Both the position numbers and the translations under genes were made by a program. Under the pieces are notes generated by a model, which saw only the letters and a program-made list of their open reading frames with translations, had not been told where the DNA came from and ran no database searches. Shown here one piece after another: positions 2,326 through 48,936 of a DNA stretch of 64,000 bases. Origin of the DNA: Amphiscolops sp. MND2022 (Eukaryota); the NCBI GenBank assembly GCA_964187785.1, contig OZ076410.1:28396001-28460000 (forward strand), written 5' to 3'. How positions within the stretch are numbered: position 1 is the first letter of the stretch; each line of letters opens with the position of its first letter.

Positions 2326-2326
2326 A

Positions 2327-13838: not shown

Positions 13839-13839
13839 A

Positions 13840-14700: not shown

Positions 14701-14701
14701 A

Positions 14702-17345: not shown

Positions 17346-17528
17346 TTCCGGTGATATTTTTGGCTCTGTGTAAGCTATGAAGTACCTGAAGTTTTTGCGA
17401 AATTTGAGAAAGTAATCAGGCGTTTATTCGATCATTGCTTCAACTATTTCAACTGAAAAACTTCCTATTTTTACTTTTAAGCTCATTGTTGTTCTTAAAT
17501 GGATGGAAAAGAAGTTTATTTGAAAAGT

Positions 17529-25380: not shown

Positions 25381-25613
25381 TCGTAATAGTGGAAATCATA
25401 GAAAAGTGTTTTCAAAAAAGTTTCAGCCCTTGCACTTCAACTTTCGACCATTGCCGGTTTATGAGCCCCAAGATTTGAATACTCGAAGCTGTGCGGTATT
25501 GATAACACCACGAGGGTGACCTTTATTGCCTCTTCTCAGGCTATGATAAAAAAACAAGAAAAATATAAGTTAAACACAAGACAAAATTATCAAAAACTGT
25601 AGACACAAACTAT

Positions 25614-26069
25614 TTACAATCGCCTGATGTCTGAGTCCATAGCTCGGGCCTAGTTGACGCCTAGACGTGGGTCTCCCTGGACTCTGACTAGACAGTCCTT
25701 GACTCCAATGGTTCTCAGCATCAGTCGGACCATTGGTGGTCCATTGATGCCAACTCCTGCTGGTGCTGGTCGAATCACGAATTTGAGCGATCCTTTCTGT
25801 CCTCTGGCTTCACGTGGAATCGTCGAAGGATTGTTGAGAGGCGGGTAACCCAACTCTATTTGACGCCAGTTAAGGCTGGTTCTCGATTCGACCGCTCTCT
25901 CTGCAGCCCTGTCCTGCTTTCTAATTGCTTCCGCATAGCCATAAAAGCCGTCGCCGTCTCCTGCCATGGCAATGGCTTGATAGCGAACTTCTGGGTTCAG
26001 TTGGTGGCTTTTCTTTTTGCTGTAAAGTGGCCGTACTTTAAGCGTTTCCTCAGTTATCTCCTGAAACAT
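25614..26069 (-). pseudogene. Divergent ribosomal protein uS5 (eukaryotic RPS2)-like ORF; one premature TAG near the C-terminus
   Basis: EETLKVRP, RYQAIAMAGDGDGFYG, LGYP, PSTIPREARGQKGSLKFVIRPAPAGVGI, TIGVKDC, VN*ARA parallel recalled uS5 motifs EVLKIMP, RFKAFVAIGD.NGHVG, RGYW, PHTVP.KV.G.CGSV.V.LIPAP.GTGI, AGI.DC, NFAKA. Confidence 0.8.
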
Positions 26070-26367
26070 ATGGTGTCATAATGCAAAAACCGGTGAGCAT
26101 ATCTATAGTTTGAGTGCGATCAGTTTTAGACTTTAAAAATTTTCATAGAGCATTAAGATTGTGAGTCAAAGTAAAAAGATTCCCCTAACTCTTATGTCGT
26201 CGTTATCATCATCATCGCTGATTATTTCTGCGACGTCGTCGCCCATTGAGTTGTTAACGGCATCCTGAAATAACATGTGGAACTTCATGTTTTGGTTCTA
26301 CCAATCTATTTTTTGAGAGATTGGTAATTGGAAATTTAAAGAACAGATCGAGTTATCCATTAAGATG

Positions 26368-26652
26368 TCAGTGAAAAAAACTTACTTCATTGTCGGAAAT
26401 TTGAATGACTTCTTCATTTTGTGTGTCTGGTTGTCTGGGTGAAGACGGGGGTGATAAATCCATGGGTTCAGAGTCATCCATATCAGTGCTGATGTCCCCG
26501 TACCAGCTCTCCACATCGTATCCATTATATTCGTATTCGGAGTTGCTCGGGCTAGACATTTTTTGAAGAACTGCAATATTGGAGTCGATTTCAAGATTTT
26601 GAAAAAAAGATGCTAAGAAATGATCTGAACTGTTTCGATTTTTCTGGTACAA
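26368..26652 (-). CDS. Unknown small acidic/Ser-rich ORF
   Basis: ORF track; low-complexity acidic composition. Confidence 0.35.
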   Translation of the reverse strand: MYQKNRNSSDHFLASFFQNLEIDSNIAVLQKMSSPSNSEYEYNGYDVESWYGDISTDMDDSEPMDLSPPSSPRQPDTQNEEVIQISDNEVSFFH

Positions 26653-26989
26653 TGTTTTGTTTTCGCTGGATTTTCCTTTACAATTTTCATATGAGAATTA
26701 TCGGTCCTTGAGACATTTTTTCTCAGTTTCTCATGAACACAAATCGTTAGTTTTGTTTACCAGCATTGAAAGTGGTTGTACCTCTTTTTTATGATTTGAA
26801 ACTTAAATACTCAGCCTGCTTTGATGAAACTGTTTATCTCAGTTGAAGCGTCTATTTTTCTCGGCTGAAGAACTACTATTTTTGTTGATTTTCTTTGTTA
26901 GGTATTTCTTCAGTTTCAGCAAGAGTTCAGTTCACCTGACTGCCTTTGCTTACATTAGAAACTCGCGGACGGTGCTGATATCGCCTTTA

Positions 26990-27238
26990 GTACGTAAAAT
27001 AGGTCACCACTTTCTCTGCTCAGACACTATGTAAACAAAATGATTTTGAAGTGCTTTCTTTTGTTTGCTCAAGTAGCAGTGAAATTTTATCACCCTGCGA
27101 AAGGCATAAAATTGATCTCAGGGTCGTAAAATTTCCGGAAGCCAATCCCCCGTTGAAAGAGTGGAGTAGTCACCGACCCGTTGAAAGAGTGGAGGAGTCA
27201 CTTGACCCTCTAATCACCAAAAAATTTTACATACTACT
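26990..27238 (-). repeat. Right terminal inverted repeat of the Maverick
   Basis: Reverse complement of 9031-9270; ends ACATACTACT. Confidence 0.92.
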
Positions 27239-28978
27239 ATTCTTAGTTGAAAAAAATGCAACGAAAAGATCATTGTTGTCAGTGAAGCACCTAATTGGTA
27301 TAAAATTTGATGAGTTGGCATCTTGATGCAGCATTTCTGAAAGGAATTGGCGAATAAACATAATGGAATCAAGAGCTTCTAATAGGGCTAGGGCTTCTGC
27401 TGTGTGCTCCTACTACTCGCATGAGTCTGAGCTCCAACATAATGGACATGCTTCATTCTTGCCGTCAGTAATAAAAACAACATATCCACCTTGGCTACCG
27501 CCGTTTTTGACAAATACCAAATGAGGTATCGCTATTAGCAACAAATAATAAAGCTGTCAGTTGCAATTTGCTGAAATATAGAGAAATTTAACATTTTTAT
27601 GGTCCTATCTATATCTCTGGTCAAATTTGACGAATATTCCCACAGGCGCGTGGATAATACGTTCACAGAAAATTTATATCTGGTCTGGTTTGACTTGCAA
27701 GCCACGATGGATGCCCTAATTTCGCACGAAAATCTTTGTTTGAAACTTCACTCGATTCTTTAAGAAACCCAATCCTTTTAGCGCATCCATTTTGGTTCAT
27801 CAGTATGCAATTTTTTAGTTGTTCCAATTCCAGACCAAGGTAATTGGAAGACGACGAGTACGCAGTGCCAACTTGTATGGTAGCTTGAATACGACTAATG
27901 ACTTTTTCTTCGAAGATCTCATTTCCACCCCTAATAAAATCGTCAACGTGCACATATATGAGTCCGATAAGAGAATGCCTTGTCAAGTGATGAAACTTTT
28001 CATTCCGCCAATTCAAACGTGTTTCGAACATTCTGGTACCATTTCAGTGAGGCATCAGCCAATCCATAAACATTTTTTTTGAGCTTCCAGATTTTAGTTG
28101 TATCAACCTCCTTAGGCGGGTATTGATCAATTGGACGAGAGGGTTGTTCTCCTTGTAAAAATGCAGATTTAATGTCTATAGTACTGATTGTCCAATCGAG
28201 AGATGCCGCAAAAGTCAAAAGAATTCTGAAGGCCTCTTTCATAGACGTTGGGGAATGTTTTTCTATTGCATCAAATTCACTTCAAAGCCTCGAGCGACCA
28301 AACGAGCTTTAATTTGGCCCTCCTTCTCTGTCAACACCTCGATACCTTCATCAAGATTCAACTGTTCACCGCTCGTAATAGGACTGCTTGCGGACTCTCC
28401 CGAAACATCATTCAACTTTATTTCTGTTTTGCACGGGAAAACAGCATTGAAATCATCGTTTTGAAACTCAATTTCTAACGGCTTCGATTGGACGGAACTT
28501 GACTCAGTCTTTGCAGCAACATATTCAATCATTGGCAATGGACTGGCATTTAAGCTGCCAGCAGTTGTGTTAATTCGCTTGAGCACTCGCTTGCTCTTAT
28601 AATCGTCCCTCCATGTCTTATAATGACGACAACACCATCTTGGCCTATTATAACTCCAGGACCGTTCCAGTCGTCATCTCGTCTGTAATAAACATGATAA
28701 ACATGAGTAAACTGTTGACTTGATTTGACCACGCAAAGCACGATTAAATTTTTCACACGCTTCTGCTGCTAGAAAACTTTTTCTTGCTAACTGCATCAAA
28801 TATAGATGTCTTTGGACATACTCGCATTTGGATCTTGGTGCCATTGCTGCTGGTTCATTTACAACGACCAACGACAAAGAAGGAATCATTCCAAAAACCA
28901 GCTGGAATGAACTGTAGACACTATGATTGCTGAGTGAGTCTTTAGCAATCAAAGCCCCAGGAAGTGCAAGCTCATAGG
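27239..28978 (-). mobile_element. Ty1/copia middle piece (integrase C-terminus, RT, RNase H start)
   Basis: SSFQLVFG; WNGPGVIIGQDG; QIKARLVARGFE; TIDIKSAFLQG; KLKKNVYGLADASLKWY; YVHVDDF; CFTDNN; copia order IN-RT-RH. Confidence 0.9.
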
Positions 28979-29582: not shown

Positions 29583-32500
29583 TCAAATAGTTAGTGGACG
29601 AGTGTGAATTCTATCTTCCTGAACTTTACGCTTAGGATAAAAATAAGAGAGTCCTTTTTTCGTCTGTTCGTAAGTACCAACATTGTGTTAAATTACACGA
29701 AAACCACGGTCACGTTGAGTGTCTCTTCTAAAACTTTTCTATATTTGGACATTGATCCATCGCCACTGCTTCAATGCTGCTTTAATGCTGCCTTATCCTC
29801 TTGTTTGATCCTTTGCTGCTAAACTTGAATTTTGTGATTGGTAATCAAAACAGCAATACGTCTTGCTGCACAGACACAACATTTCTGTGCAACGGAATTC
29901 TTTCTAGAAGAGTCCAGGTTCGCGCTTGTCATGTTTCTTGTGTTTTGTGCAGCAAGTAGGGGGAAAGAAATTTACATTGGCTCTGAAGTCGTCTGCACAA
30001 TCCGAGGATCGGAGATCTATCCGCTCTCGGTTTTCATCAGGGTGAACAGTGTCTTATAATTCTTCTTCAACCAATGCAAGAATAAGTGAGTCTGTATCCA
30101 TTTCAAGCATCTCAAACTTATTAATGTCACAATGCTTGTCGAAAAAGTTGTAATAGAGCTCCAACTTTCACAATTTAGCATATTGCAGAATGAAGAATCC
30201 AACAATGATTGGTTCCCTGTGCTCATTCTCAGACTTTACAAGCTCCACCTCGTACAACTTCTCATCGATAATTTTCAGTCTCCTGAACATTTTGTTGTTG
30301 ATAGCTGCGTGCGCTTTTTCGTCGCATAATAACTTTGTGACAGCCTGACGGCTCCTGTCCATAATTTGATAGTCGTATGAACTGTTTGCGAGCAGCTTCA
30401 TTGTCTCTGCTACAACACTGGTGTTGGGATTCTCATCTCCTTCTCTTCTTGCATCGACTGCGGACTGAGCACATTTGTTGAAGCATTTCTTAGTGTTTTA
30501 CTGAACAAATCGATAAATCGTTTTACAAATCAACCCCAAACTCAAGTAAAGAGTAACAGAGGTGTTATTAGTGTTCCATTCTCCAGCGAATAGCTAGAAA
30601 TTAACATTCTCCTCGGTTGCGATAAAAATCCTTTTTGTTCAGCATAACTTTTCATCAACGATCCAATGTCATCTCTGCCCACGTTAATAATTTTAAAGAT
30701 TGGAGGAAAGTTAGCAAATTTTTGATTCTCTCCAACAATCTCTCTTCGCTGAGAGGTATTTTGTAGGGGAAAGACTGACGTAATAGCTGCTTGACTGGAA
30801 CGTAGGTTTCGTAAAGCTGCCACCACTCAATTCATACATTTCCATAACTGTATACCCCTTTTCCAATAAATAATGTCTTTGCAACTCATCCATCTCTCTC
30901 TTTTTGTTCCCCTCTGTAAAAGAAGGACCTGCTTCTTGAAATGGACAGTAATGATAATAACACCCCATGGCTTCAAATACAGTGTTACAGTGTTCACAGA
31001 AACCGTCAACGCTGAAGCAGTCAATCTTTTACTGTGTTCCTGTGGTGTAGGAGCTGACAATTTTACAGTCTGGTCTGATTCGTTGATAGTAAGACATTAC
31101 CATGTTCTCAAAGCTCCTGGTCTTGTTCTGAATCTACCAGACTTTGGATCGAGATCCCATTGCGTGTAAAGACCAGTAGGCATTTCCTGACACATTGAGA
31201 AGGGGTAAAGCTGACTAACATCAATGCCCACTATTGATTTACAAACGTTTGCTGAAGTACGGATAAGCGTCTCGTCCACAACAGCTTTTCTTGTAAATAC
31301 AATGGATGGACCACCAACCATATTGTCTCGTATCTTATTAAGCAAGTCTTTATCGGTCTCTGTGAAAGGGTAAAATTTCACATTTGTTGATTTGTGGAGA
31401 CACATTTTGGCTAAATTGGGTCAAGTACAACCAAGGTTCAACATATCAATTCATTTGTGGTGGTAAATGCAATCATTTTCTGCATAGCCTCCAGTGTGGG
31501 AACGACGTCCTTGTTATTGTACCAGCGCAAAAAGTCTTCGAACGTAGTCATTTTCTCAGTTTCCCATATATTGACGCAATTCTCATACTTTTGCTTGCCT
31601 GTCAGTGGAGGTTGATTCAATTGCAACTTGATCAAAGCGGACTCTGGAGATGAACCACTCTTGAGCAAGTTTTCAATTTCAGTATAATCACTCTCCAGGG
31701 GGTTCGAATTTCGCAATTTGTTGAAAAATGACTCATAGGGAGGTAATTGCGTGTCATTTAGCTTTTCAGGACAGTCGAACCATTCATATGTGAAGTAACT
31801 TTTCGTCTCTGACGTCTTGTGAGCTTTGAGGAAAGAATCAAGCTGGTTGCTCCACCCAAGAAATTCAGAATATCCAGCAACGGAACATCTCCAAATTTGA
31901 AAGAGACAAATTGATTCGCTTTTTTCTTACTGTTGGCTCCAGCTCTCTCTCGATAACCAATAACGGTAACAAATAATGCTTGATGATGTTAATGTCGTAT
32001 ATGGAACTATTGTAGCCAAAGACTGGTAACACGTTGCAATGTCTTTCCAAGTGTTCCTGCAAGTCAAGAAGTTGATTCGTTTGCATTTGCAAGAATTGAG
32101 TAGAAACGTCTTTTCCTTCAACCTCAAGACATTCATCTTCAAATTCCAACACAATATTTCTTGGTCCGCCTCTTCCATTGAGTACAACAAAAACTGCAAT
32201 GAGACGGCTTTTGATGCTAGTCTTGATATCTAAAAACTGTAGTTTCATTTGAGCTTTGCTCTGTGCGGCTAAACTCTCCAGAGCAACAAAAAATGATTCA
32301 ATCGAATCTCGCCGGTTGGAATTGCATAGAAATATTGGGGTTTCAATCAAAATGGACGATATAGATACAGATATCGGTACGGGCTTCCCAATCCACTGTG
32401 TTGTCTCGGTATCCTTGAATTGTTCCTCTCTCACACAAATTGATTCAAAGTCAAAGAAGTTTATGAACAATTGCTGTTTTTTTGTGTAAGGTATGGAAAG

Positions 32501-33718
32501 GAAGTCCAGTTTATCAAACAGCGTTTCACTCAATTGATACTTATTTCTCGGGTAAACGTGTTTGATGCGATCCTTGCAAATAACCAAGTGACGTTCCAAA
32601 TTTCCAGTTTTGTTGAAAACCTGGTTACCATTTGAACAACGATAAGCTTTGAATAATGCATTGTTATTGGAGACGTAACAAATGTGAGTATTGTAACGCA
32701 ATAATCTGGCAGTGTTGCAATACTTCTGAACACTCCTCCGTGCGAGTTCACCGACACTTGATCCACCCACAATATCGATATCGTAACGAAAGATAATGAC
32801 TTGAATCAGGTCTTCAACAAGAGGAATATCGTCCACGCAGACTCCTTGGAAAGTTGCTGCTCCTATTTCTCCTTCCTTTTCCAAATACCAATTGAACAAT
32901 TTGCAAGTCTCTTCCTCCAATTTTTCATTTCCGTGGAGATGAAGTGCTAATACTCTGAATAAACACAATTTGTCGTTATAGGGTTGTCTAGTGTTCTGCT
33001 CGAATGTCAAACAGTTCACAGTATGATTTTTCGGTAGTGGATCAGGGAGTACAGCATCTGTACAACCCATGGGAATGTCTTTGAGCAGAGCAGCAATCAC
33101 AGATAGATTGGTGAGCTTGTAAAATTTCCATTTTGTATTCAACCTTTCTCTAGTACAAGATTCTATTACGTCAGTTTGATTCACATGGTTTTTCAATTTT
33201 GTCAAGTCGTCTTTAGTGCACAAAAGTTGTGATCGATCCAACAAATTATTGTTTTTGTGCGCGTAGAAACATCGGTAACTTCCATCTTCTAAATTTTTTA
33301 GAATGAATCCGAATGCGAGGTTAACTTTTGCAGCACACTTCAAGTTGTTGAAAAAATGATCAATTTTATCATTGACAATGTCCGTGTTCAGTGTTTCCAC
33401 TGCGTAATTAAACACGTTATGTCGCTCACGTTCGAATTCAGAGTCCACGAGAAAATTTTGACAGGCACGTAACTCCTCTTTGAGTCTCTCATCATCGATA
33501 CCATCAAAAAAGGAGAAGAATCGTCACTTGTTTTATAAGTGTCTCCATGTACTTGACTTTTATGTTGTCGTAATCCAAAAGAGCCAGTAAATGTGTCTTT
33601 GCAAATAATACAAATGTGAGCAACTGCGGGTTTGGGAGCTCCATGCTTCTTTGCAATGTGATAATTCAAGTCATTTTGGGACTTGGTTGAGAAATTGGGA
33701 CATTGAGTCATTGAACCA
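29583..33718 (-). pseudogene. VSR-type protein-primed family B polymerase, left-arm copy
   Basis: NDKLCLFR; FDFES; GYNSSIYD; GGPSIVF; GIDVSQLYP; VDGFCEHCNTVFEAMGCYYHYCP (VSR-like); KLLANSSY; many lesions. Confidence 0.9.
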
Positions 33719-34212: not shown

Positions 34213-35025
34213 ATGTCTGTTAAACAACAACTTCCATCTCTATCTTTGCTGTATTCAATTTACGAAGACGTTCCAGAACAAACATTGGACGAAACTGACG
34301 TTGACTCGTACTTTTATCACAATATATTGGACGTTACAAAGACGGACAATCGTCTCGTGCGAGTCAGCAAGGAGTCCAATAAAAACTTATTTCAATCAAA
34401 GTCTTTGAATTTTGCGACTTGAAAGCTCAACAACGCTTTTTCCTTGACAAGGAAATTTCCATCACAAAAACAAGAGCTCGCTGCGACCCTCAGCAGACTG
34501 CGTCGCTTTTGAAAACAGTACGACCACGCACGAAAGCCAACTCAATATCCCCTACCAAAACCGTTACACGAGATTGGCTTCACGCTGTGGAAGGACGAAC
34601 GCTTCTCACACTATTATCTAATTTTAAAAAGCACACTGATCGTCATTTGCTTTTGTCTTCCCGCTTTGAAAAAGACAAGAATTGTTGTTTTTCATTGAAA
34701 AAGTTTCTATATGGGGGAAATCAGCTTGTATTGACAGAAATTGTCAACTTCAGTCACAACGAACTGTAGGAACTGTGTAAGGACCGCTTCTTAATATCGA
34801 CCAAGAGCGGAATCATTGAAAGCAACTACGACGTCTAAAGGAACTCAACGCAATTATAAATACAATTGGGGACGATTGCTGTCCTGAATGTGAGCTACAA
34901 AAAAGCATATTCGAACATTACTGCGAGGAGGATTCTAGAGAACATTATCAATACAATTGTGCAAAGTGTGACATTGATTGCCTGGTGCAGGGTATTCTTT
35001 TTAAGGATCAAACGCGGCACTTGAT
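34213..35025 (+). pseudogene. Decayed accessory ORF, possibly PC4-like; mirrored at 38030-38695 and 43192-43857
   Basis: MSVKQQLPSLSLLYS...FTLWKDE...CFSLKKFLYGGNQ...VNFSHNEL; three copies. Confidence 0.6.
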
Positions 35026-35320
35026 CCTAAAAGATGCTGGTATACATTCATTCAGAGCCAGGACGACAAGGGATTACGAGCGAGAACAAACACAACGAGT
35101 CAAAAACGACAAAGGAATGGATTTTCTATGACAATTCCTAAAAAAGCCAACCAATCAACGCTCAGAAGAACCACCAGCAAAAAAAACAAGTCCATGTAGA
35201 GAAAAGGTCGTGTCAAATTCCTATTGGCTGTTCAATATCCTTACAAATTAATTTTTCAAGCAACTAGACTTCATTTCATTTCAAACTTATCTACAATCAT
35301 GACGTTCTACAACAACAACA

Positions 35321-35734
35321 ATGTTCTTCTCAGTCTCCAACACTGTAACTCAGTGGAGTTTGGACTTTTCACCAGACTCTGTCACAATCATAGTGAACGA
35401 TATCGTCCAAGACTTGACAATTTCCTACTTGGAACTTCCAATCGCAGCCTTCAACACTTTGATAAATCAAAGACAACAGTTCTTAGAGAACCATTTAGCT
35501 CGCGTACCCATAACTCCCAACCAGCAAGGCACGTGGGAGATGCAAGACGAGGCACGAGCCAGCGTTGGTGACCACGATGTAAGCAGCGATTTCGTTCCCA
35601 ATGACTTGGATGCCACTCAGTTCCATTGGGAGAATCCAAACGTAGAGCTGGATGCAGTGTATCGACCAGGCATTGATACTCCCTTCTTTCCGTCACTGTT
35701 TGAAACCTTTCCAGTAGCTGAAAGCGCAGACTAG
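35321..35734 (+). CDS. Unknown accessory ORF, left arm
   Basis: 137-aa frame preserved in both arms (mirror at 37317-37730). Confidence 0.55.
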   Translation: MFFSVSNTVTQWSLDFSPDSVTIIVNDIVQDLTISYLELPIAAFNTLINQRQQFLENHLARVPITPNQQGTWEMQDEARASVGDHDVSSDFVPNDLDATQFHWENPNVELDAVYRPGIDTPFFPSLFETFPVAESAD

Positions 35735-35953
35735 CCCATTGAAATTGACGATGAACAAGATAAAGAGAGCGAGTACCCCACAACACCCGAGTCACAGAGA
35801 CCCACGCAGACGCCACCGCTGCATAGTCCATTCGGGACTCATTTGGAAGATATACCAAACGCTGTGTACCGTAGTTTGTTTGAATAATTGTATTTATTTT
35901 ACGTAATCAATTCAATTTTTATTATTCACAATTTCTTTCTCAAATTGGTTGTT

Positions 35954-36196
35954 ATGTGTGAGACGATAGCAAACGTAAGAGTTGCCTTGATTATTGTCCT
36001 AACTGTAAGCTTGTTTATTTATCAAATAGAGACTAAAGAAAAAGTGGGACAAAATCTCGATCCCTGCGCTAAAGTGTACAAGGACTATTGTGTGAACGAG
36101 GTAGAATGTTTTAGCTACGTGGAAGGAAACATTTTAGGTTGTTTCTGTCGTCCACTTTACGGAGGGAAACGCTGTGATAAATTCTTGTGGTGGTAA
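35954..36196 (+). CDS. Intact 80-aa EGF-like growth factor with N-terminal hydrophobic segment
   Basis: MCETIANVRVALIIVLTVSLFIYQ...CAKVYKDYCVNEVECFSYVEGNILGCFCRPLYGGKRCDKFLWW (C-7-C-5-C-10-C-1-C-8-C). Confidence 0.9.
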   Translation: MCETIANVRVALIIVLTVSLFIYQIETKEKVGQNLDPCAKVYKDYCVNEVECFSYVEGNILGCFCRPLYGGKRCDKFLWW

Positions 36197-36229
36197 TAGG
36201 AATGTTAGTTGCACATTTCCCAATTAAAA

Positions 36230-36815
36230 TTTGACGTAAAAATTGTACCTTAAAAACTGACGTGACGTGAAAATTTTACATTAAAATCTGACGTGTTGTA
36301 AAAATTTTACGTTAAAATCTGACGTGTTGTAAAAATTTTACTTTAAAATCTGAAACGTTGTAAAACATTTGCTCCGACTGCCATGTTCTACTCTGTTTGC
36401 ACTATTGGATTAGTCTTGTTAACCTTACTAGCACTCGCTACAGTCGCCGTTTCCTTTGGTCTGTTCGTTATTGTAATTAGTGATTAATGTTCTTCCACAA
36501 AAGATATTAACAAAAGACAATAAACGAGAAAAAAGACAAAAACACTCCGTGAAAACGACAAATTTTGCACTTGCGATACATTATTATAAAACAGATTTCG
36601 AAGCAATTTTACGTCCTGTCAGATTTTGAAGTGAAAATTTTCCTTCTTGTCAGATTTTAAAGTAAAATTTTTTCGTCTTGACAGATTTTAAAGTAAAGTT
36701 TTTACAACATGTCAGATTTTAAAGTAAAACTTTTACAACAAGTCAGATTTTAACGTGAAATTATAACAACACGTCAGATTTTAATGTAAAATTTTTACGT
36801 CACGTCAGATTTCGA
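36230..36815. repeat. Centre of the fold-back: ~30-bp tandem repeats (aaaatctgacgtgttgtaaaaattttacgtt) in inverted orientation around a ~240-bp unique spacer
   Basis: Repeats at ~36230-36365 and their reverse complements at ~36600-36815. Confidence 0.85.
36383..36487 (+). CDS. 34-aa single-TM hydrophobic micropeptide
   Basis: MFYSVCTIGLVLLTLLALATVAVSFGLFVIVISD*; below the ORF-track cutoff. Confidence 0.45.
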   Translation: MFYSVCTIGLVLLTLLALATVAVSFGLFVIVISD

Positions 36816-36830: not shown

Positions 36831-37085
36831 CTAACATTCCTTATACCACCACAAGAAATTATCACAGCGTTTCCCTCCGTAAAGTGGAGGACAGAAACAA
36901 CCTATAATGTTTTCTTCCACATAGCTAAAACATTCTACCTCGTTCATACAATAGACTTTGAACACTTTAGCGCAGGGATCGAGATTCTGTCACACTTTTT
37001 CTGTAGTCTTTACTTGATAAATGAACAAGCTAACAGTCAGGACAATAATCAAGGCAATTCTTACTTTTGCTATCGTCTCACACAT
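36831..37085 (-). pseudogene. Mirror copy of the EGF-like gene with an internal TGA
   Basis: All six Cys retained; GGA->TGA before the EGF domain. Confidence 0.85.
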
Positions 37086-37730: not shown

Positions 37731-39413
37731 TGTTGTTGTTGTAGAACGTCTTGATTGTAGATAAGTTTGAAAAGAAATGAAGTCTAGTTGTTTGAAAAAT
37801 TAATTTGTAAGGATATTGAACAGCCAATAGGAATTTGACACGACCTTTTCTCTACATGGATTTGTTTTTTTTGCTGGTGGTTCTTCTGAGCGTTAATTGG
37901 TTGGCTTTTTTCTCAGGAAATGTCGTAGGAAAACCATTCTTTTGTCGTTTTCGACTTGTTGTGTTTGTTCTCGCTCGTAAGCCCTTGTCGTCCTGGCTCT
38001 GAATAATTGTATACCAGCATCTTTTAGGGTCAAGTGCTGCGTTTGATCCTTAAAAAGAATACCTTGCACCAGACAATCAGTGTCACACTTTGCACAATTG
38101 TAGTGATAATGTACTCTAGAATCCTCCTTGCAGTAATGTTCGAATATGCAATTTTGTAGCTCATATTCAGGACAGTAAACGCCCCAATTGTATTTATAAT
38201 TGCGTTGAGTTCCAATTTACGTCCTAGTTGCTTTCAGTGATTCCGCTCTTGGTCGATGTAAAATAACGGTCCTTATACAATTCGTACAGTTCGTTGTGAC
38301 TGAGGTTGACAATATCTGTCATTACAAACTGATTTCCCCCATATAGAAACTTTTTCAATGAAAAACAACAATTCTTGTCTTTTTCAAAGCGGGAAGACAA
38401 AAGCAAATGACGATCAGTGTGCTTTTTTAAAATTAGATAATAGTGTGAGAAGAGTTCGTCCTTCCACAGCGTAAAACCAATCTCTTGTAACGGTTTTTTT
38501 AGGGGATATAGAGTTGCTTTTCGTGCGTGGTCGTACTGTTTTAAAAAGTGACGCAGTCTGTTGAGGGTCGAGCGAGCTCTTTGTTTGCAATGGAAAGTAC
38601 GTGTCAACCTCAGCTTCGTCCAAAGTTTGTTCTGGATCGTCTTCGTAAGTTGAATACAGCAAAGATAGAGATGGAAGTCGTTGTTTAACAGACATTCACT
38701 ACTCTAAAAGAGTTCAAATTAAAATGATAAATGAAAATTAGTGTAGTGGATAAAAGCAACGCCTACGTGCCACAAAATTTTGACAATGCTATGAACAGCG
38801 CGTGACTTTGCTTTTAACCACTGCACTAACAGTCTTTTTTATTTCCATTTATGGAATGCAAATTAAGGAATGCAAGATGAAAGAGTCACCAGCTTTTTAT
38901 TATGTTCGAATAATTACTCCACTTGAGAGGTTTCCCCTGATGTATTAGCGTCTTTTCGAGGGAATTTGTTCCACTTGAGTAATTTTCTCAGACACTGTGG
39001 CGTCCGTTGAGGCAAACATGTTCAACTTGAGTGATTTTCTCAGACAATGTGTCGTCCCCTGAGGGAAACATGTTCCACTTGAGCAATTACCTTTCATTGA
39101 ACTTTTCATTTAACTCAGGATCAAAAGTGGATGACAGGCACACGAGGGAACACTGACCGTCAGTGACGCTAGTGCGTAATTACTTTTTCCCTTTATGGTA
39201 CGCTGATTATTCCTTTTATGGTTCAATGACTCATACCTTCCGTATCTGGTTGAGCAATTACATAAACAGAATTTTCAACCATTTTCATTTCGTTATTCAT
39301 TTCACTTTTTTGCAACCTAGTTGATTGCTCCCGAACTGAAACTTGCTACATTTTGCTGTTACAATTCTTTTTGCTTGCTTTCAGATAGAGTCTTTTTACA
39401 CTTGCTGCTTATA

Positions 39414-42400
39414 ATGCCTGCTCTTGATCGAAATCTACAAGTTGCCTGTCCCAATTGTGGTGCCAAAGTATCTAAGCAAAACCTGTCAGTACACAAAAAA
39501 AAAGATTCTCCGTTGTGGCTTTATTTTTCTTTCAATGTCCCAATTTCTCAACCAAGTCCCAAAATGACTTGAATTATCGCATTACAAAGAAACATGGAGC
39601 TCCCAAACCCGCAGTTGCTCACATTTGTAAGATTTGCAAAAACAAATTTACTGGCTCTTATGCATTACGACAACATAAAAGTCAAGTACATGGAGACACT
39701 TATAAAACAAGTGACGATTCTTCTCCCCTCTTTGATGGTATCGATGATGAGAGACTCAAAGAGGAGTTACGTGCCTGTCAAAATTTTCTCGTGGACTCTG
39801 AATTCGAACGTGAGCGACATAACGTGTTTAATTACGCAGTGGAAACACTGAACACGGACATTGTCAATGATAAAATTGATCATTTTTTCAACAACTTGAA
39901 GTGTGCTGCAAAAGGTAACCTCGCATTCGGATTCATTCTAAAAAATTTAGAAAATGGAAGTTACCGATATTTCTACGCGCACGAAAACAGTACTTTGTTG
40001 GATCGATCACAATTTGTGTGCACCAAAGACGACTTGACAAAATTGAAAAACATTGTCAATCAAACTGACTTAATAAAATCTTGTACCAGAGAAAGGATGA
40101 ATACAAAATGGAAATTTTACAAGCTCACCAATATATCTGTGTTTGCTGCTTTGCTCAAAACATTCCCATGGGTTGTAGAGATGCTGTACGCCCTGATCCA
40201 CTACTGAAAAACCACAATGTGAACTGTTTGACATTCGAGCAGAACACTAGACAACCCTATAACGACAACTTGTGTTTATTCAGAGCATTAGCACTTCATC
40301 TCCACGGAAAGGAAAAATTGGAGGAAGAGACTTGCAAATTGTTCAATTGTTATTTGGAAAAGAAAGGAGGAATAGGGGCAGCAACCTTCCAAGGAGTCTG
40401 CGTGGACGATATTCCTCTTGTTGAAGGCCTGATTCAAGTCATTATCTTTCGTTACGATATCGATATTGTGGGTGGATCAATTGTCGGTGAACTCGCACGG
40501 AGGAGCGTTCAGAAGTATTGCAACACTGCCAGATTATTGCGTTACAATAACCACATTTGTTACGTCTCCAATAACAATGCATTATTTAAAATTTATCGTT
40601 GTTCAACTTGTAACCAGGTTTTCCACAAAACTGGACGTTTGGAACGTCACTTGGTTAATTGCAAGGATCGCATCAAGCACGTTTATCCGAGAAATAATCA
40701 TTACGATACACGTACCGGTAAGCTGCCTTTAGTCAAGCAGCGTAATCTGAGTAAAATGGTAAAATGGTCATTCAGCGTAAGTTAGTCAAGACGGTCTATG
40801 CTTCAACGGTGTAGCAAAATCAACGCGCGTAATGGAAAATTGTGTAAGTTAGTCAAAACACGTAATTAGAAAAAAGCGGAAGTTAGTCCAAAAATACTCT
40901 TTTTCGTAAGTCAGTCAAAACGTTGACTAACTTCCACTTTTTGCAAATTGAGGGACTCCTATACTTCCGAAAAGTGGAATGTGGTCAAAGTTTTGACTAA
41001 CTTACACCATGTTTATATGCATTCAAAACTCAGTGTTCATTTTAATTCTAATTCATACCACAGCATCATAAACCAGTCAAAGTAAACAATGATTCAATAA
41101 ATAATTAGTTATCATTACTGAGCTCTACCGTGCATAGTACGTATAAACTGCATTCAATGCAAGTTGCACACGTGAACACGTGTGTTTCATCCACGCATTT
41201 ACGTGCAAATAAAATACCTTGTAGGTATCGCAAGGATCGCATCCATTGCAAGGATCGCATCAAACACGTTTACCCGAGAAATAAGTATCAATTGAGTGAA
41301 ACGCTGTTTGATAAACTAGACTTGCTTTCCACGCCTTACACAAAAAAACAGCAATTGTTTTTAAACTTGGCCGCCTTTGACTTTGAATCAAATTGTGTGA
41401 GAGAGGAACAATTCAAGGATACCGAGACAGCACAATGGATTGGGAAGCACGTGCCAATATCTGTATCTATATCGTCCAATATGATTGAAATATCAATATT
41501 TTCTCTGCAATTCCAACCCGGGAGAATTGATTGAATCATTTGTTGTTGCTCTGGAGAGTTTAGCCGCTCAGAGCAAAGCCCAAATGAAGCTACAGTTTTT
41601 AGATATCAAGACTAGCATCAATAGCCGTCTTAATGCAATTTTTGCTGTACTCAATAGAAGACGCAGACCAAGAGAAACCGTGTTGGAATTTGAAGATGAA
41701 TGTCTTGAGGTTGAAGCAAAAGACGTTTCTACTCAGTTCTTGCAAATGCAATAGAATCAACTCCTTGACTTGCAGGAATACTTGGAAAGAGATCGCAACG
41801 TGATAGCAATCTTTGGCTACAATAGTGCCAAATACGACATTAACCTTATCAAGCGTAATTTTTACCATTATTGGTTAACGAGAGAGAGCTGGAGCCAAAA
41901 AGCGAATCAATTTGTTCTTTTCAAAATTGGCGATGTTCAGTTGCTGAATATTTTGAATTCCTTCGGTGGAGCAACCAGCCTTGATTCTTTCCTCAAAGCT
42001 TACAAGACGTCAGAGAGGAAAAGTTTCTTCCCATATGGATGTTTCGACTGTCCTGAAAAGCTAAATGACACACAATTACCTCAATATGAGTCATTTGAGT
42101 CAATATGAACCATATGAGTCATTCAACAAATTGCGAAATTCAAACCCACTGGAGAGTGATTATACTGAATATAAAAAATTGCTCAAGAGTGGTTCATCTC
42201 CGGGAGTCTGCCTTGATCAAGTTGCGGTTGAAACAACCTCCACTCTTAGGGAAGCAAAATTATGAGTATCTCGTCAACATATGGGAGACTGATAAAATGA
42301 CTACGTTCAAAGACTTTTTGCGCTGGTACAATAACAAGGACGTCATTCCCACACTGGAGGCTTTGCAGAAAATGATTGCGTTTTACCAACACAAAGAAAT

Positions 42401-43169
42401 TGATATGTTGAAGCTTGGTTGTACTTCACCCATTTCAGCCAACATATGTCTCCACAAATCAACAAATGCGAAATTTTACTCTTTCACAGAGAACGATAAA
42501 GACTTGCTTAATAAGATACGAGACAAAATGGTTGGTGGTCCATCCATTGTATTTACAAAAAAGCTGTTGTGAACGAGACGCTTATCCGTACTTCAGCAAA
42601 CGTTTGTAAATCAATAGTAGGCATTGATGTTTGTCAGCTTTACCCCTTCTCAATGTGTCAGGAAAGGCCTACTGGACTTTACACGCGATGTGATCTCGAT
42701 CCAGAGTCTGGTAGATTCAGACCCCGTCAGAACAAGACGAGGAGCTTTGAGATTATGGTAATGTCTTACTATCAACGAATCAGACCAGACTGTAAAATTG
42801 TCAGCTTCTAAACCACAGGAACACAGTAAAAGATTGACTGCTTCAGCGTTGACGGTTTCTGTGAACATTGTAACACTGTATTTGAAGCCATGGGGTGTTA
42901 TTATCATTACTGTCCATTTCAAGAAGCACGTCCTTCTTTTACAGAGGAAGGTATTCAGAGGGGAACAAAAAAAGAGAGAGATGGATGAGTTGAGAAGACA
43001 TTTTTTATTGAAAAAGGGGTATACAGTTATGGAAAAGTATGAGTTGAGTGGTGGCAGCTTTACGAAACCTACGTTTTAGTCACGCAGATTTTACGTCAGT
43101 CTTTCCCCTACAAAACACCTCTCAGCGAAGAGAGATTGTTGGAGAAAATCAAGAATGGAAGCCTTTTTT
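39414..43169 (+). pseudogene. VSR-type pPolB, right-arm copy 1 (interrupted by an insertion, 3'-truncated)
   Basis: N-terminal zinc fingers MPALDRNLQVACPNC...; same motifs as 29583-33718; ends at a tandem-duplication junction. Confidence 0.9.
40700..41232. mobile_element. ~530-bp non-coding insertion in pPolB
   Basis: Absent from the copies at ~32540 and ~45845; internal gttagtcaa/ttgactaac repeats; flanked by a ~40-bp duplication of pol sequence. Confidence 0.75.
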
Positions 43170-46100
43170 TGTATACCAGCAACTTTTAGGGTCAAGTGCT
43201 GCGTTTGATCCTTAAAAAGAATACCTTGCACCAGACAATCAGTGTCACACTTTGCACAATTGTAATGATAATGTTCTCTAGAATCCTCCTTGCAGTAATA
43301 TTCGAATATGCACTTTTGTAGCTCATATTCAGGACAGTAAACGCCCCAATTGTATTTATAATTGCGTTGAGTTCCAATTTACGTCGTAGTATCTTTCAAT
43401 GATTCCGCTCTTGGTCGATGTAAAATAACGGTCCTTATACAATTCGTACAGTTCGTTGTGACTGAGGTTGACAATATCTGTCATTACAAACTGATTTCCC
43501 CCATATAGAAACTTTTTCAATGAAAAACAACAATTCTTGTCTTTTTCAAAGCGGGAAGACAAAAGCAAATGACGATCAGTGTGCTTTTTTAAAATTATAT
43601 AATAGTGTGAGAAGAGTTCGTCCTTCCACAGCGTAAAACCAATCTCTTGTAACGGTTTTTTTAGGGGATATAGAGTTGCTTTTCGTGCGTGGTCGTACTG
43701 TTTTAAAAAGTGACGCAGTCTGTTGAGGGTCGAGCGAGCTCTTTGTTTGCAATGGAAAGTACGAGTCAACCTCAGCTTCGTCCAAAATTTGTTCTGGATC
43801 GTCTTCGTAAATTGAATACAGCAAAGATAGAGATGGAAGTCGTTGTTTAACAGACATACACTACTCTAAAAGAGTTCAAATTAAAATGATAAATGAAAAT
43901 TAGTGTAGTGGATAAAAGCAACGCCTACGTGCCACAAAATTTTGACAATGCTATGACAACAGCGCGTGACTTTGCTTTTAACCACTGCACTAACAGTCTT
44001 GTTTATTTCCATTTATGGAATGCAAATTAAGGAATGCAAGATGAAAGGGAAACCAGCTTTTTATTATGGTCGAATAATTACTCCACTTGAGAGGTTTCCC
44101 CTGATGTATTAGCGTCTTTTCGAGGGAATTTGTTCCACTTGAGTAATTTTCTCAGACACTGTGGCGTCCGTTGAGGCAAACATGTTCAACTTGAGTGATT
44201 TTCTCAGACAATGTGTCATCCCCTGAGGGAAACATGTTCTACTTGAGCAATTACCTTTCATTGAACTTTTCATTTAACTCAGGATCAAAAGTGGATGACA
44301 GGCACTTGAGGGAACACTGACCATCAGTGACGCTAGTGCGTAATTACTTTTTCCCTTTATGGTACGCTAACTATTCTTTTTATGGTTCAATGACTCATAC
44401 CTTCCGTATCTGGTTGAGCAATTACATAAACAGAATTTTCAACCATTTTCATTTCGTTATTCATTTCACTTTTCTGCAACCTAGTTGATTGCTCCCGAAC
44501 TGAAACTTGCTACATTTTGCTGTTACAATTCTTTTTGCTTGCTTTCAGATAGAGTCTTTTTACACTTGCTGCTTATAATGCCTGCTCTTGATCGAAATCT
44601 ACAAGTTGCCTGTCCTAATTGTGGTACCAAAGTATCTAAGCAAAACCTGTCAGTACACAAAAAAAAAAGATTCTCCGTTGTGGCTCTATTTTGCTTTCAA
44701 TGTCCCAATTTCTCAACCAAGTCCCAAAATGACTTGAATTATCGCATTACAAAGAAACATGGAGCTCCCAAACCCGCAGTTGCTCACATTTGTAAGATTT
44801 GCAAAAACAAATTTACTGGCTCTTATGCATTACGACAACATAAAAGTCAAGTACATGGAGACACTTATAAAACAAGTGACGATTCTTCTCCCCTCTTTGA
44901 TGGTATCGATGATGAGAGACTCAAAGAGGAGTTACGTGCCTGTCAAAATTTTCTCGTGGACTCTGAATTCGAACGTGAGCGACATAACGTGTTTAATTAC
45001 GCAGTGGAAACACTGAACACGGACATTGTCAATGATAAAATTGATCATTTTTTCAACAACTTGAAGTGTGCTGCAAAAGTTAACCTCGCATTCGGATTCA
45101 TTCTAAAAAATTTAGAAAATGGAAGTTACCGATATTTCTACGCGCACGAAAACAGTACTTTGTTGGATCGATCACAATTTGTGTGCACCAAAGACGACTT
45201 GACAAAATTGAAAAACATTGTCAATCAAACTGACTTAATAAAATCTTGTACCAGAGAAAGGATGAATACAAAATGGAAATTTTACAAGCTCACCAATATA
45301 TCTGTGTTTGCTGCTTTGCTCAAAACATTCCCATGGGTTGTAGAGATGCTGTACGCCCTGATCCACTACTGAAAAACCACAATGTGAACTGTTTGACATT
45401 CGAGCAGAACACTAGACAACCCTATAACGACAACTTGTGTTTATTCAGAGCATTAGCACTTCATCTCCACGGAAATGAAAAATTGGAGGAAGAGACTTGC
45501 AAATTGTTCAATTGTTATTTGGAAAAGAAAGGAGGAATAGGGGCAGCAACCTTCCAAAGAGTCTGCGTGGACGATATTCCTTATGTTGAAGGCCTGATTC
45601 AAGTCATTATCTTTCGTTACGATATTGATATTGTGGGTGGACTCGCACGGAGGAGTGTTCAGAAGTATTGCAACACTGCCAGATTATTGCGTTACAATAA
45701 CCACATTTGTTACGTCTCCAATAACAATGCATTATTTAAAATTTATCGTTGTTCAACTTGTAACCAGGTTTTCCACAAAACTGGACGTTTGGAACGTCAC
45801 TTGGTTAATTGCAAGGATCGCATCAAACACGTTTATCCGAGAAATAATTATCAATTGAGTGAAACGCTGTTTGATAAACTAGACTTGCTTTCCACGCCTT
45901 ACACAAAAAAAACAGCAATTGTTTTTAAACTTGGCCGCCTTTGACTTTGAATCAAATTGTGTGAGAGAGGAACAATTCAAGGATACCGAGACAGCACAAT
46001 GGATTGGGAAGCACGTGCCAATATCTGTATCTATATCGTCCAATATGATTGAAATATCAATATTTTCTCTGCAATTCCAACCCGGGAGAATTGATTGAAT

Positions 46101-47730
46101 CATTTGTTGTTGCTCTGGAGAGTTTAGCCGCTCAGAGCAAAGCCCAAATGAAGCTACAGTTTTTAGATATCAAGACTAGCATCAATAGCCGTCTTAATGC
46201 AATTTTTGCTGTACTCAATAGAAGACGCAGACCAAGAGAAACCGTGTTGGAATTTGAAGATGAATGTCTTGAGGTTGAAGCAAAAGACGTTTCTACTCAG
46301 TTCTTGCAAATGCAATAGAATCAACTCCTTGACTTGCAGGAATACTTGGAAAGAGATCGCAACGTGTTAGCAATCTTTGGCTACAATAGTGCCAAATACG
46401 ACATTAACCTTATCAAGCGTAATTTTTACCATTATTGGTTAACGAGAGACAGGTGGATCCAAAAAGCGAATCAATTTGTTCTTTTCAAAATTGGCGATGT
46501 TCAGTTGCTGAATATATTGAATTCCTTGGGTGGAGCAACCAGCCTTGATTTTTTCCTCAAAGCTTACAAGACGTCAGAGACGAAAAGTTTCTTCCCATAT
46601 GGATGTTTCGACTGTCCTGAAAAGCTAAATGACACACAATTACCTCAATATGAGTCATTTGAGTCAATATGAACCATATGAGTCATTCAACAAATTGCGA
46701 AATTCAAACCCACTGGAAAGTGATTATACTGAATATAAAAAATTGCTCAAGAGTGGTTCATCTCCAGGAGTCTGCCTTGATCAAGTTGCGGTTGAAACAA
46801 CCTCCACTCTCAGGGACGCAAAATTATGAGTATCTCGTCAACATATGGGAGACTGATAAAATGACTACGTTCAAAGACTTTTTGCGCTGGTACAATAACA
46901 AGGACGTCATTCCCACACTGGAGGCTTTGCAGAAAATGATTGCGTTTTACCAACACAAAGAAATTGATATGTTGAAGCTTGGTTGTACTTCACCCATTTC
47001 AGCCAACATATGTCTCCACAAATCAACAAATGCGAAATTTTACTCTTTCACAGAGAACGATAAAGACTTGCTTAATAAGATACGAGACAATATGGTTGGT
47101 GGTCCATCCATTGTATTTACAAAAAAGCTGTTGTGAACGAGACGCTTATCCGTACTTCAGCAAACGTTTGTAAATCAATAGTAGGCATTGATGTTTGTCA
47201 GCTTTACCCCTTCTCAATGTGTCAGGAAAGGCCTACTGGACTTTACACGCGATGTGATCTCGATCCAGAGTCTGGTAGATTCAGACCCCGTCAGAACAAG
47301 ACGAGGAGCTTTGAGATTATGGTAATGTCTTACTATCAACGAATCAGACCAGACTGTAAAATTGTCAGCTTCTAAACCACAGGAACACAGTAAAAGATTG
47401 ACTGCTTCAGCGTTGACGGTTTCTGTGAACATTGTAACACTGTATTTGAAGCCATGGGGTGTTATTATCATTACTGTCCATTTCAAGAAGCACGTCCTTC
47501 TTTTACAGAGGAAGGTATTCAGAGGGGAACAAAAAAAGAGAGAGATGGATGAGTTGAGAAGACATTTTTTATTGAAAAAGGGGTATACAGTTATGGAAAA
47601 GTATGAGTTGAGTGGTGGCAGCTTTACGAAACCTACGTTTTAGTCAAGCAGCTTTTACGTCAGTCTTTCCCCTACAAAATACCTCTCAGCGAAGAGAGAT
47701 TGTTGGAGAGAATCAAGAATGGAAGCCTTT
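43170..47730 (+). repeat. Tandem duplicate of 38008-43169
   Basis: At ~43170 pol sequence (aagaatggaagcctttt) switches to ttgtataccagc, as at 38008. Confidence 0.9.
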
Positions 47731-48936
47731 TTGGATATAATCAGTGTGATATTGAAGTTCCTCCAGAGCCCCGCGAACCTTTTGCTAACTTTCCTCCAAT
47801 CTTTAAAAATATTAACGTGAAAAGAGATGACATTGGATCGTTGATGAAAAGTTATGCTGAACAAGAAGGATTTTTATCGCAACCGAGGAGAATGTTAATT
47901 TCTAGCTATTCGCTGGAAAACGTAACACTAATAACACCTCAGTTACTCTTTTCTTTGAGCTTGGGGTTTGTATGTAAAAAGACTTATCGATTTGTTCAGT
48001 ATACCCCTAAGAAATGCTTCAACAAATTTGTTCAGTCCGCAGTCGATACAAGAAGAGAAGGAAATTAGAATCCTAACTCCAGTGTGGTAGCAGCGACAAT
48101 GAAGCTGCTCGCAAACAGTTCGTACGGCAACAAATTATGGACAGGAGCCGTCACACTGTCACAAAGTATTTATGCGACGAAAATGTGCACGCAATTATAA
48201 ACAACAAAATGTCCAGGAGACTGAATATTATCGTGAGAAGTTGTACGAGGGGGAGCTTGTAAAGTCTGAGAATGAGCACAGGGAACCAATCATTGTTGGA
48301 TTCTTCATTCTGCAATATGCTAAATTGAGAAAGTTGGAGCTCTTTTACAACTTTTTCGACAAGCATTGTGACATTAATAAGTTTGAGATGCTTGAAATGG
48401 ATACAGACTCATTTATTCTTGCAGTGGTTGAAGAAGAAATATAAGACACTGTTCGCCCTGATGAAAAACGAGAGTGGATAGATCTCCGTTCCTCGGATTG
48501 TGCAGACGACTTCAGTGCCAATGCAACGACAAATTTCTTTCCCCCTACTTGCTGCACAAAACACAAGAAACATGACAAGCGCGAACCTGGACTCTTCTAG
48601 AAAGAATTCCGTAGCACAGAAATGTTGTGTCTGTGCAGCAAGACGTATTGCTGTTATGATTCCCAATCACAAAAATTCAAGTTTAGCAGCAAAGGGTCAA
48701 ATAAGAGGAAGGAAAATGCAGCATTAAAGCAGCATTAAAGCAGCATTAAAGCAGTGGCGATGGATCAATGTCCGAATATAGAAAAGTTTTAGAAGAGACA
48801 CTCAACGTGACCGTGGTTTTCGTGTAATTGATCACAATGTTGGTACTTCCGACCAGACAAAAAAGGACTCTCTTATTTTTATCCAAAGCGTATAGTTCAG
48901 GAAGATGGAATTCACACTCGTCCACTAGCTATTTGA
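44578..48936 (+). pseudogene. VSR-type pPolB, right-arm copy 2 (full length, many lesions)
   Basis: Includes KLLANSSYG, EMDTDS and ends EDGIHTRPLAI*. Confidence 0.9.

Follow-up and report, generated by a model that had tools for sequence, protein, structure and literature searches.

An ErbB-ligand-type EGF gene conserved in a clade of Maverick/Polinton elements

The open reading frame (ORF) at positions 35954-36196 of the DNA analyzed here, a stretch of 64,000 nucleotides from Amphiscolops sp. MND2022 (contig OZ076410.1, positions 28,396,001 to 28,460,000; hereafter referred to as the window), encodes a small protein with an EGF domain of the type present in the ligands of ErbB receptors. This similarity is far beyond chance, because both a phmmer search with the protein itself and a profile made from 35 of its relatives match ErbB ligands in the Protein Data Bank (PDB). 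The gene is a conserved gene of a Maverick/Polinton clade, in which it occupies a fixed position, and the pattern of substitutions indicates that its EGF domain is under long-term purifying selection. Based on the whole of the evidence, we consider it reasonably probable that this conserved Maverick/Polinton gene encodes a secretory EGF-type ligand acting on a receptor of the host.

The window contains two elements that carry such a gene. The ORF under study lies in a palindromic composite (28979-49510), and a related gene is present in another Maverick (9031-27238), which we refer to as the first element. The original prediction, which was made from the letters of the window, had recognized both genes and had regarded them as a growth-factor cargo shared by two elements with unrelated polymerases. 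Three features presented below go beyond it: a mirror copy of the gene at 36831-37085 on the minus strand, the composite itself, and the relatedness of the two elements.

The EGF-like ORF and its domain

The ORF has the following parts.

35954-36196, plus strand: EGF-like ORF of 80 amino acids, open from the ATG at 35954 to the stop codon at 36194-36196; matches in the PDB, and relatives that are 65-80% identical
35975-36022, plus strand: N-terminal hydrophobic segment, residues 8-23 (signal peptide or signal anchor); helix over residues 2-29 in the AlphaFold2 (AF2) model
36065-36175, plus strand: EGF domain from Cys1 to Cys6, residues 38-74, including Y-G-G-K-R-C; sequence, profile and fold matches
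36176-36193, plus strand: C-terminal tail D-K-F-L-W-W; conserved, with six residues here and seven in relatives

The N-terminal hydrophobic segment had been noticed in the original prediction, and it is present at residues 8-23. In the window protein it is connected to the EGF domain by a short linker rich in Thr, Lys and Glu; in the relatives, the uncharged N-terminal run has a median length of 18 residues and reaches up to 25 residues. The spacing of the six cysteines, C-x7-C-x5-C-x10-C-x-C-x8-C, fits the pattern of ErbB ligands (C-x7-C-x4-5-C-x10-13-C-x-C-x8-C), and the same six-cysteine pattern is present in 70 small relatives. As had been claimed, the spacing can be read both in this ORF and in the ORF 9518-9679 of the first element, together with an ending of the YGG(K/R)RC type, which in the latter reads Y-G-G-R-R-C-E-K-Y-L-W-Y-H. 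A Tyr-x-Gly-x-Arg-Cys motif is present between Cys5 and Cys6 and aligns with the corresponding motif of HB-EGF, EGF and betacellulin. Residues Y69, G70, G71, R73 and C74 are invariant in alignment A2; in the alignment of 35 members, the six cysteines and G71 are invariant, and Y69 and R73 are conserved in at least 90% of the sequences. Past Cys6, the family has a tail with the pattern acidic, x, aromatic, x, Trp, aromatic, x, which is one residue shorter in the window copy. The protein ends exactly seven residues after Cys6 in 49 of the 70 small six-cysteine proteins, with the members of clusters counted in.

When the window protein was compared by phmmer with all PDB chains, the best match was HB-EGF (3.2e-6), followed by an ant EGF-like toxin, heregulin and betacellulin, and the search returned solely ligands of ErbB receptors. 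In the case of the domain of the first element (9518-9679), the best match was EGF (1.5e-8), followed by TGF-alpha, betacellulin and epiregulin. The view that the two virus-like elements have an EGF-type ligand gene in common is thus supported. The profile of 35 relatives matched betacellulin best (5e-14), and its best 26 matches were all ErbB ligands (39-55 bits; 5e-14 to 5e-7). Spitz scored 32 bits in this comparison and the EGF domains of Notch, urokinase and clotting factors at most 31 bits, with Notch-type EGF repeats entering only from 1e-6. The profile also aligned the family tail to the hydrophobic C-terminal tail of betacellulin.

The fold comparison led to the same class of proteins. 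The AF2 model calculated on the 35-sequence alignment has a predicted local distance difference test (pLDDT) score of 75.6 overall and of about 78-85 over the domain; an earlier model from 8 sequences (pLDDT 49.5) was not used. Foldseek placed receptor-bound betacellulin, neuregulin-1 beta and epiregulin at the top of the PDB matches, which also included Spitz, TGF-alpha, EGF and the ant toxin; the top matches have template modelling (TM) scores of about 0.8, normalised to the target, and root mean square deviations of 1-2 Å. Among the viral structures of BFVD, the top match was the growth factor of rabbit fibroma virus (P08441; 80 amino acids), with an E-value of 1.8e-4 over 70 of the 80 columns, and nine more named EGF-like or growth-factor proteins of poxviruses were found within the top 14. 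These poxvirus matches come from avipox, capripox, yatapox and orthopox viruses, and they are followed by EGF-domain proteins of nudiviruses. Thus, there is a direct viral precedent for the idea of a growth factor, given that growth factors of poxviruses rank first among the viral fold matches.

An exact look-up of the window protein found no identical protein on record. A poly(A) signal after the ORF was given no weight, because it is not conserved among copies.

A family of small EGF-like proteins

A word-indexed protein search identified 13 protein clusters that are 65-80% identical to the window protein. For the EGF domain of the first element there is an intact relative of 100 residues, P0014. 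The profile was searched against 1.84 billion representative proteins, which yielded 209 representatives at E<=1e-3 and 37 at E<=1e-10; many of these matches are 75-125 residues long and cover the whole profile. Among the 150 matches listed, 88 have at most 130 residues, 34 have six cysteines, 32 have the tail motif, and 18 combine six cysteines with a terminal tail. Public assemblies contain at least 30 distinct clusters of these small proteins at 50% identity. About half of the small representatives lack one cysteine, as expected of decaying genomic copies. In several lineages, basic residues are followed by a long uncharged N-terminal run and then by a linker rich in N-glycosylation sequons.

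The members that could be placed come from four samples (ERZ25074608, ERZ1742291, ERZ23493485 and SRR24961301). For the family members that were looked up, annotated databases give neither a name nor an accession. A scan of JGI metagenomes gave a match of only 16 residues, which was disregarded. The same profile search also returned the long proteins P0019, P0020 and P0031, which contain 4-9 tandem ligand-type EGF domains connected by Pro/Thr-rich linkers. Such proteins, presumably of cellular origin, could be the source from which the domain was captured.

The EGF-like gene has a fixed position in Maverick/Polinton elements

The original prediction had called for a survey of Polinton-like elements, and in every full-length context that we fetched the EGF-like gene was found in the same place. 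In all fourteen loci (L001-L014), it precedes the genes for the ATPase (Pox_A32), the rve integrase, the capsid proteins and the protease and shares their strand. Loci L001-L004 contain relatives of the gene at 35954-36196, and L005-L014 represent four other lineages, including that of the first element.

In L001-L004, the left terminal inverted repeat (TIR) is followed by the polymerase gene on the opposite strand, two ORFs and the EGF-like gene. After about 4 kb of small ORFs come the packaging ATPase, the rve integrase, the putative minor and major capsid proteins, an adenain-like protease and the right TIR. In L003, the TIRs extend over at least 316 nt at 94% identity. In L005-L014, the EGF-like gene is the first called gene and opens a same-strand array, in which it is followed by two small ORFs, the ATPase, the integrase, the capsid genes, the protease and a polymerase that is also on this strand. 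In three of these lineages, one and the same EGF-like protein sequence occurs on 4 to 10 different contigs, within elements whose genes are long and open. The presence of identical proteins on several contigs suggests that these elements have been copied recently.

The packaging ATPase matches Pox_A32 with 27.4 bits (cut-off 22.8). The integrase match (rve, PF00665) has 45.5 bits in L006 (cut-off 32.6), and precomputed matches exist in L005-L014. The protease has a weak Peptidase_C5 match (E=0.003-0.01), and the putative capsid proteins were assigned by size, order and mutual similarity alone. Exonuclease and polymerase motifs are readable in the polymerases of both element types; PF03175 gave only E=0.081, for one fragment, and the N-terminal part of the polymerase gave only zinc-finger matches in the PDB. 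Applied to 40-odd ORFs and fragments of both elements, Pfam detected little beyond zinc fingers, Pox_A32, rve and the weak Peptidase_C5 match. An OTU-like domain suspected by eye before the polymerase of the second element type, to which the gene at 35954-36196 belongs, was dropped for lack of Pfam support.

Selection and the relation between the two element types

Between lineages, the proportion of synonymous differences (pS) over the 44 codons of the domain and tail is 0.63-1.1, and hence saturated, whereas that of nonsynonymous differences (pN) is only 0.24-0.36. Because a saturated pS is combined with a low pN in a family conserved over deep divergence, the EGF domain is kept by long-term purifying selection, as had been supposed. 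Among six close copies of the lineage of the window gene itself, the ratio of nonsynonymous to synonymous substitution rates (dN/dS) is 0.24-0.85, which fits a mixture of constraint up to the time of insertion and neutral decay thereafter.

The EGF domains of the two elements in the window are 42-47% identical, so that they are clearly different in sequence, as stated in the original prediction. The elements themselves, however, are not unrelated. Translated comparison of the two element types, including full-length relatives, revealed a collinear similarity with the following identities.

EGF domain: 47-57%
ATPase: 48-56%
Integrase: 43-52%
Minor capsid protein: about 35%
Major capsid protein: 33-38%

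The polymerases, which had been called unrelated, gave no match at normal thresholds; a relaxed search gave a weak collinear match over the core (23-28% identity, summed E of about 4e-5). Both begin with C2H2 fingers and are by motif of the protein-primed B type, and they are better described as very divergent. As judged from these comparisons, both elements are Mavericks related to each other, whose polymerases have been swapped and are very divergent. Replacement of the polymerase in otherwise related Polintons has been described for the pPolB1 and pPolB2 groups (PMC10748475). The pattern there is the same, in that elements closely related overall possess very different protein-primed polymerases; however, in the second element type the polymerase has also changed sides relative to the EGF gene and has an inverted orientation.

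A possible function of the EGF-like gene, and alternative explanations

In the explanation that we favor, the protein consists of a putative N-terminal signal or signal anchor, a linker that is often rich in N-glycosylation sites, a single EGF domain of the ErbB-ligand type and an aromatic tail of seven residues. When the genes of the element are expressed, the EGF domain would be exposed on the cell or released from it, and would bind an EGFR/ErbB-type receptor of the host. The resulting growth or survival signal would favor replication of the element DNA in the same cell or in its neighbors. Poxvirus growth factors stimulate the growth of cells around the infection, and by analogy with them a ligand mode of action is the most likely one; a mitogenic role, as proposed originally, would be plausible.

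Several observations weigh against this explanation. On the one hand, there are points concerning the assignment of the domain. The Pfam EGF family (PF00008) gave no match to the window protein at E<=0.01, and its score for the domain of the first element, 19.1 bits, is under the cut-off of 21.5; a precomputed match described as faint is recorded for P0171. The E-values of the Foldseek matches in the PDB are modest (2e-3 and weaker), which is expected for a domain of 40 residues. On the other hand, there are points concerning the mode of action. The topology of the precursor is unlike that of cellular ErbB ligands, since it has an N-terminal hydrophobic segment only and no C-terminal span, and the long N-terminal segment of some lineages could serve as a membrane anchor, which would fit a surface protein with another role. 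A scan of the viral contigs of IMG/VR found no relative and thus gave no evidence of a free virus as carrier. Finally, the EGF domain has diverged more quickly than the core genes have (45-61% versus 67-83% identity in canonical lineages), and this would fit an interaction with the host but also a weaker constraint.

The protein might, for instance, be a type II anchored surface protein, whose EGF domain docks the particle or the infected cell on ErbB-bearing cells and promotes entry or spread without being mitogenic. N-terminal runs of up to 25 residues that are preceded by basic residues and followed by sequon-rich sequence look more like a signal anchor than like a cleaved signal, fast evolution on a fixed scaffold is also a feature of receptor-binding proteins, and membrane-bound particle proteins are conceivable given that nematode Mavericks have been reported to encode a fusogen (PMC10680173). 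However, the hydrophobic run is only about 16 residues long in the lineage of the window gene, the viral protein that matches best over the whole length is a poxvirus growth factor that is secreted and of equal size, the EGF gene has a terminal position in the element, at a distance from the capsid module, and no particle has been seen. We consider such a docking function unlikely. It seems to us very unlikely that the protein acts as an antagonist or decoy that blocks or diverts ErbB signaling, or that it binds another partner, for example to damp a host response. The scaffold of EGF ligands has been reused elsewhere, as exemplified by the ant venom peptide among the best matches, and the residues outside the Cys/Gly/Tyr/Arg scaffold vary widely; yet those shared with true agonists are conserved, namely the Tyr and Arg (at least 90%), the invariant Gly and the aromatic or hydrophobic tail after Cys6, and all known viral homologues retrieved by the fold search are named growth factors.

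With respect to the origin of the gene, the original prediction had offered selection or exchange of cargo. The former stands; the latter is not required, since the simplest reading is that the EGF gene was already present in the common ancestor of both element types, because in both it shares the strand of the ATPase block and precedes this block. Transfer of the gene between element types, instead of common descent, is in our estimation somewhat unlikely. It would explain why the EGF domains are as similar between the deep clades (52-57% identity) as within canonical lineages (45-61%), without correlation between EGF and core distances, whereas the core proteins drop from 67-83% identity within canonical lineages to 33-51% between the clades, and exchange of modules has been documented for Polinton polymerases (PMC10748475). 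However, these similarities are near the floor set by a small invariant scaffold, on which saturation is expected to produce flat distances. Moreover, the N-terminus of the second element type, which starts with M-C-E, is deeply diverse, with representatives that are only 38-43% identical. We regard it as highly improbable that the host has taken over the local copy and keeps its frame open. In favor of this, the ORF has stayed open in a copy in which the ORFs on both sides of it are broken, but at the break density of these neighbors (1.3-1.7 per 100 codons) a frame of 81 codons stays open by chance with a probability of about 0.25-0.33. In addition, the mirror copy has a stop codon, the tail of the window copy lacks one residue in comparison with most of the family, and elsewhere no identical protein is on record.

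Comparison with known systems

Virus-encoded EGF mimics are a textbook feature of poxviruses. The growth factors of these viruses (P08441; those of vaccinia, ectromelia, sheeppox and Yaba-like disease viruses and of avipoxvirus) are likewise small and have a hydrophobic leader at the N-terminus and one ErbB-ligand-type EGF domain, and the one of rabbit/Shope fibroma virus has the same length as the window protein, 80 amino acids. The identity with them is only 18-26%, however, and hence no closer than that with cellular ligands. Further differences are that the Maverick family is carried not by poxviruses but by Mavericks/Polintons, which integrate and replicate by protein priming, that the aromatic terminal tail of seven residues is peculiar to the Maverick family, and that some poxvirus growth factors have a C-terminal membrane span, which the Maverick family lacks.

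The cellular ErbB ligands (EGF, TGF-alpha, HB-EGF, betacellulin, epiregulin, neuregulin-1 and Drosophila Spitz) have the cysteine spacing, the Tyr-x-Gly-x-Arg-Cys motif and the fold in common with the family, as well as a hydrophobic or aromatic residue a few positions past Cys6. They are type I membrane precursors with the EGF domain placed before the span, whereas the Maverick protein ends 6-7 residues past Cys6, and its gene is intronless, multi-copy and always located within a mobile element. The ant venom peptide MIITX2-Mg1a (PDB 7r6p), of about 50 residues, is likewise a non-canonical, independently deployed mimic of ErbB ligands, and it is among the best matches in sequence and fold; it differs in being a component of an animal venom and not a mobile-element gene, and it lacks the tail motif of the family.

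Nematode Mavericks carry wosp proteases and krma kinases as cargo (meeting report PMC10680173). Like the EGF-like gene, these genes are host-derived and are carried beside the replication and capsid core. However, wosp and krma are lineage-specific cargo moved between species, whereas the EGF-like gene is fixed, syntenic and clade-wide, with deep internal divergence. In the full-text library that was searched, EGF-like genes are not reported for Mavericks, Polintons or adintoviruses. The carrier, the layout of the precursor and the tail motif are new relative to the known virus-encoded EGF mimics.

Mavericks are widespread in animal genomes, and little is known of their biology, for example of the cells in which they replicate and of whether they still form particles. 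We put forward tentatively, as a possibility, that a Maverick/Polinton clade with copies that in part look recently active possesses an agonist of ErbB receptors, or a protein for docking to such receptors, of its own. If so, elements that are usually treated as transposons would manipulate or target the growth-factor signaling of dividing (germline or stem) cells of their host, and the gene, with its fast evolution at the interface with the receptor, would be the first determinant of host signaling or tropism to be described in elements of this class. A ligand-like gene that is both conserved and fast-evolving may then point to the host receptor and the cell types involved, and would indicate that, besides the core for replication and capsid formation, Mavericks possess genes for interaction with the host.

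The palindromic composite and the state of the local copy

The EGF-like ORF is part of a composite with the following features.

28973-28978, no strand: flanking hexamer CATAGG, with its partner CTTAGG at 49511-49516 (5 of 6 bases); possible target-site duplication
28979-49510, no strand: composite of two inverted left halves of a Maverick of about 15 kb; both outer ends are "left" termini
29600-33711, minus strand: left-arm polymerase with C2H2 fingers and motifs of the protein-primed PolB type; in many pieces, bounds approximate
35321-35734, plus strand: upstream neighbor ORF, 137 amino acids here; longer in L001 and scored as broken against it
36236-36370, plus strand: 31-bp tandem repeat of 4.3 copies with TGACGT motifs, downstream of the EGF-like ORF; also in relatives
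36383-36487, plus strand: small hydrophobic ORF of 34 amino acids, its DNA conserved in L001-L004; last piece of the left half before the junction
36488-36545, no strand: junction zone of the inverted half-elements, asymmetric, tail to tail
36605-36812, minus strand: mirror 31-bp repeat array of 6.7 copies
36831-37085, minus strand: mirror EGF-like gene, its protein 84% identical, with one in-frame stop
38007-47732, plus strand: tandem duplication of 5.16 kb in the right arm, 38007-43168 and 43169-47732, 98-99% identical

The composite has a size of 20.5 kb and lacks the ATPase, the integrase and the capsid module. In a self-comparison of the window, region 34456-36352 was found inverted at 38596-36682 with 92.5% identity, and the inverted similarity reaches position 28971 on the left and 49518 on the right. 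Comparison with the four related loci (L001-L004) shows that each arm corresponds to the left half of an element, and in both arms a much-broken polymerase gene reads away from the center. The left arm continues for about 290 bp past the stop codon of the EGF-like ORF, through the repeat array and the small hydrophobic ORF, before the inverted copy begins, which is cut inside its own repeat array. The 5.16-kb duplication is younger than the palindrome, since it is confined to the right arm.

The outer ends of the composite are the same kind of termini as those of the first element, and the sequences flanking it continue a single retroelement integrase reading frame on the minus strand. We infer that the composite is a defective fold-back derivative that was integrated as one unit into the integrase gene of a retrotransposon. 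A fold-back artefact of the assembly as the cause of the palindrome was rejected, because the arms differ by 5-12% and one of them contains the tandem duplication.

Both arms have breaks in ORF234 and ORF227, the two ORFs that precede the EGF gene.

ORF234: at least two frame changes and two stops in the left arm; at least two frame changes and two stops in the right arm
ORF227: three stops in the left arm; two stops in the right arm

The gene at 35954-36196 had been described as intact. Its 80-codon frame is indeed open, but the copy sits in a truncated palindromic relic with broken neighbors, and its apparent integrity says little about function at this locus. The local copy is a relic, and its frame has probably remained open by chance.

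The array of 31-bp repeats downstream of the EGF gene is conserved in position between the window and L001-L004 and varies in copy number. Each of the repeats carries a TGACGT core, which is the half-site of CRE/ATF-type elements, and the array may be a regulatory array for the flanking genes.

The first element and other observations

The first element shows the hallmarks of a Maverick/Polinton, which are its TIRs, of about 237 bp and 93-95% identical, and a perfect 6-bp duplication, ATTCTT, at 9025-9030 and 27239-27244. Its EGF-like gene is the first gene and starts about 110 bp past the left TIR. Each gene was compared with intact relatives, which gave the following breaks.

9031-27238, plus strand: first element, complete Maverick insertion of 18.2 kb, TIRs at 9031-9267 and 26993-27238; most genes broken
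9374-9679, plus strand: EGF-like gene, broken by at least one frame change and one in-frame stop in comparison with the intact P0014
ORF197: no frame change, one in-frame stop
ATPase: at least one frame change, no stop
ORF231: at least one frame change, no stop
Integrase: at least one frame change, two stops
ORF135: at least one frame change, no stop
Protease: at least one frame change, no stop
ORF193: no frame change, two stops
Polymerase (N-terminal 640 residues): at least one frame change, four stops
ORF122, the minor capsid candidate of 286 residues, the major capsid protein candidate and ORF232: no frame change, no stop

Inside the polymerase of the type of the first element, between the exonuclease motifs, there is a weak match to endonuclease VII/HNH-like nucleases (E 0.015 and 0.07), at 20451-21308 on the plus strand of the window and at 18354-20273 in L006. 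It recalls the nuclease insertions that have been described in some Polinton polymerases (PMC10748475). Downstream of the polymerase lies a 107-bp tandem array (23880-25375) of about 11-14 copies that are 82-90% alike, which is open in one frame as Lys/Arg-rich repeats. Between this array and the right TIR, the ORF 25650-26069 on the minus strand matches the C-terminal domain of ribosomal protein S5 (PF03719, 30.4 bits, cut-off 21.5), and it could be another passenger that stems from the host, or a fragment that was captured.

An Rfam search of the window gave no match. At 56000-64000, the G+C content rises from about 0.38 to 0.45-0.50 with a strong GC skew, and minus-strand ORFs of this region match Integrase_H2C2 and the integrase p58 C-terminal domain, which identifies a different retroelement. 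At the other end of the window, positions 1-4029 are a partial second copy of the integrase-to-capsid region of the first element (12173-16407), with 97% identity, that is bounded by the edge of the window and by other repeats.

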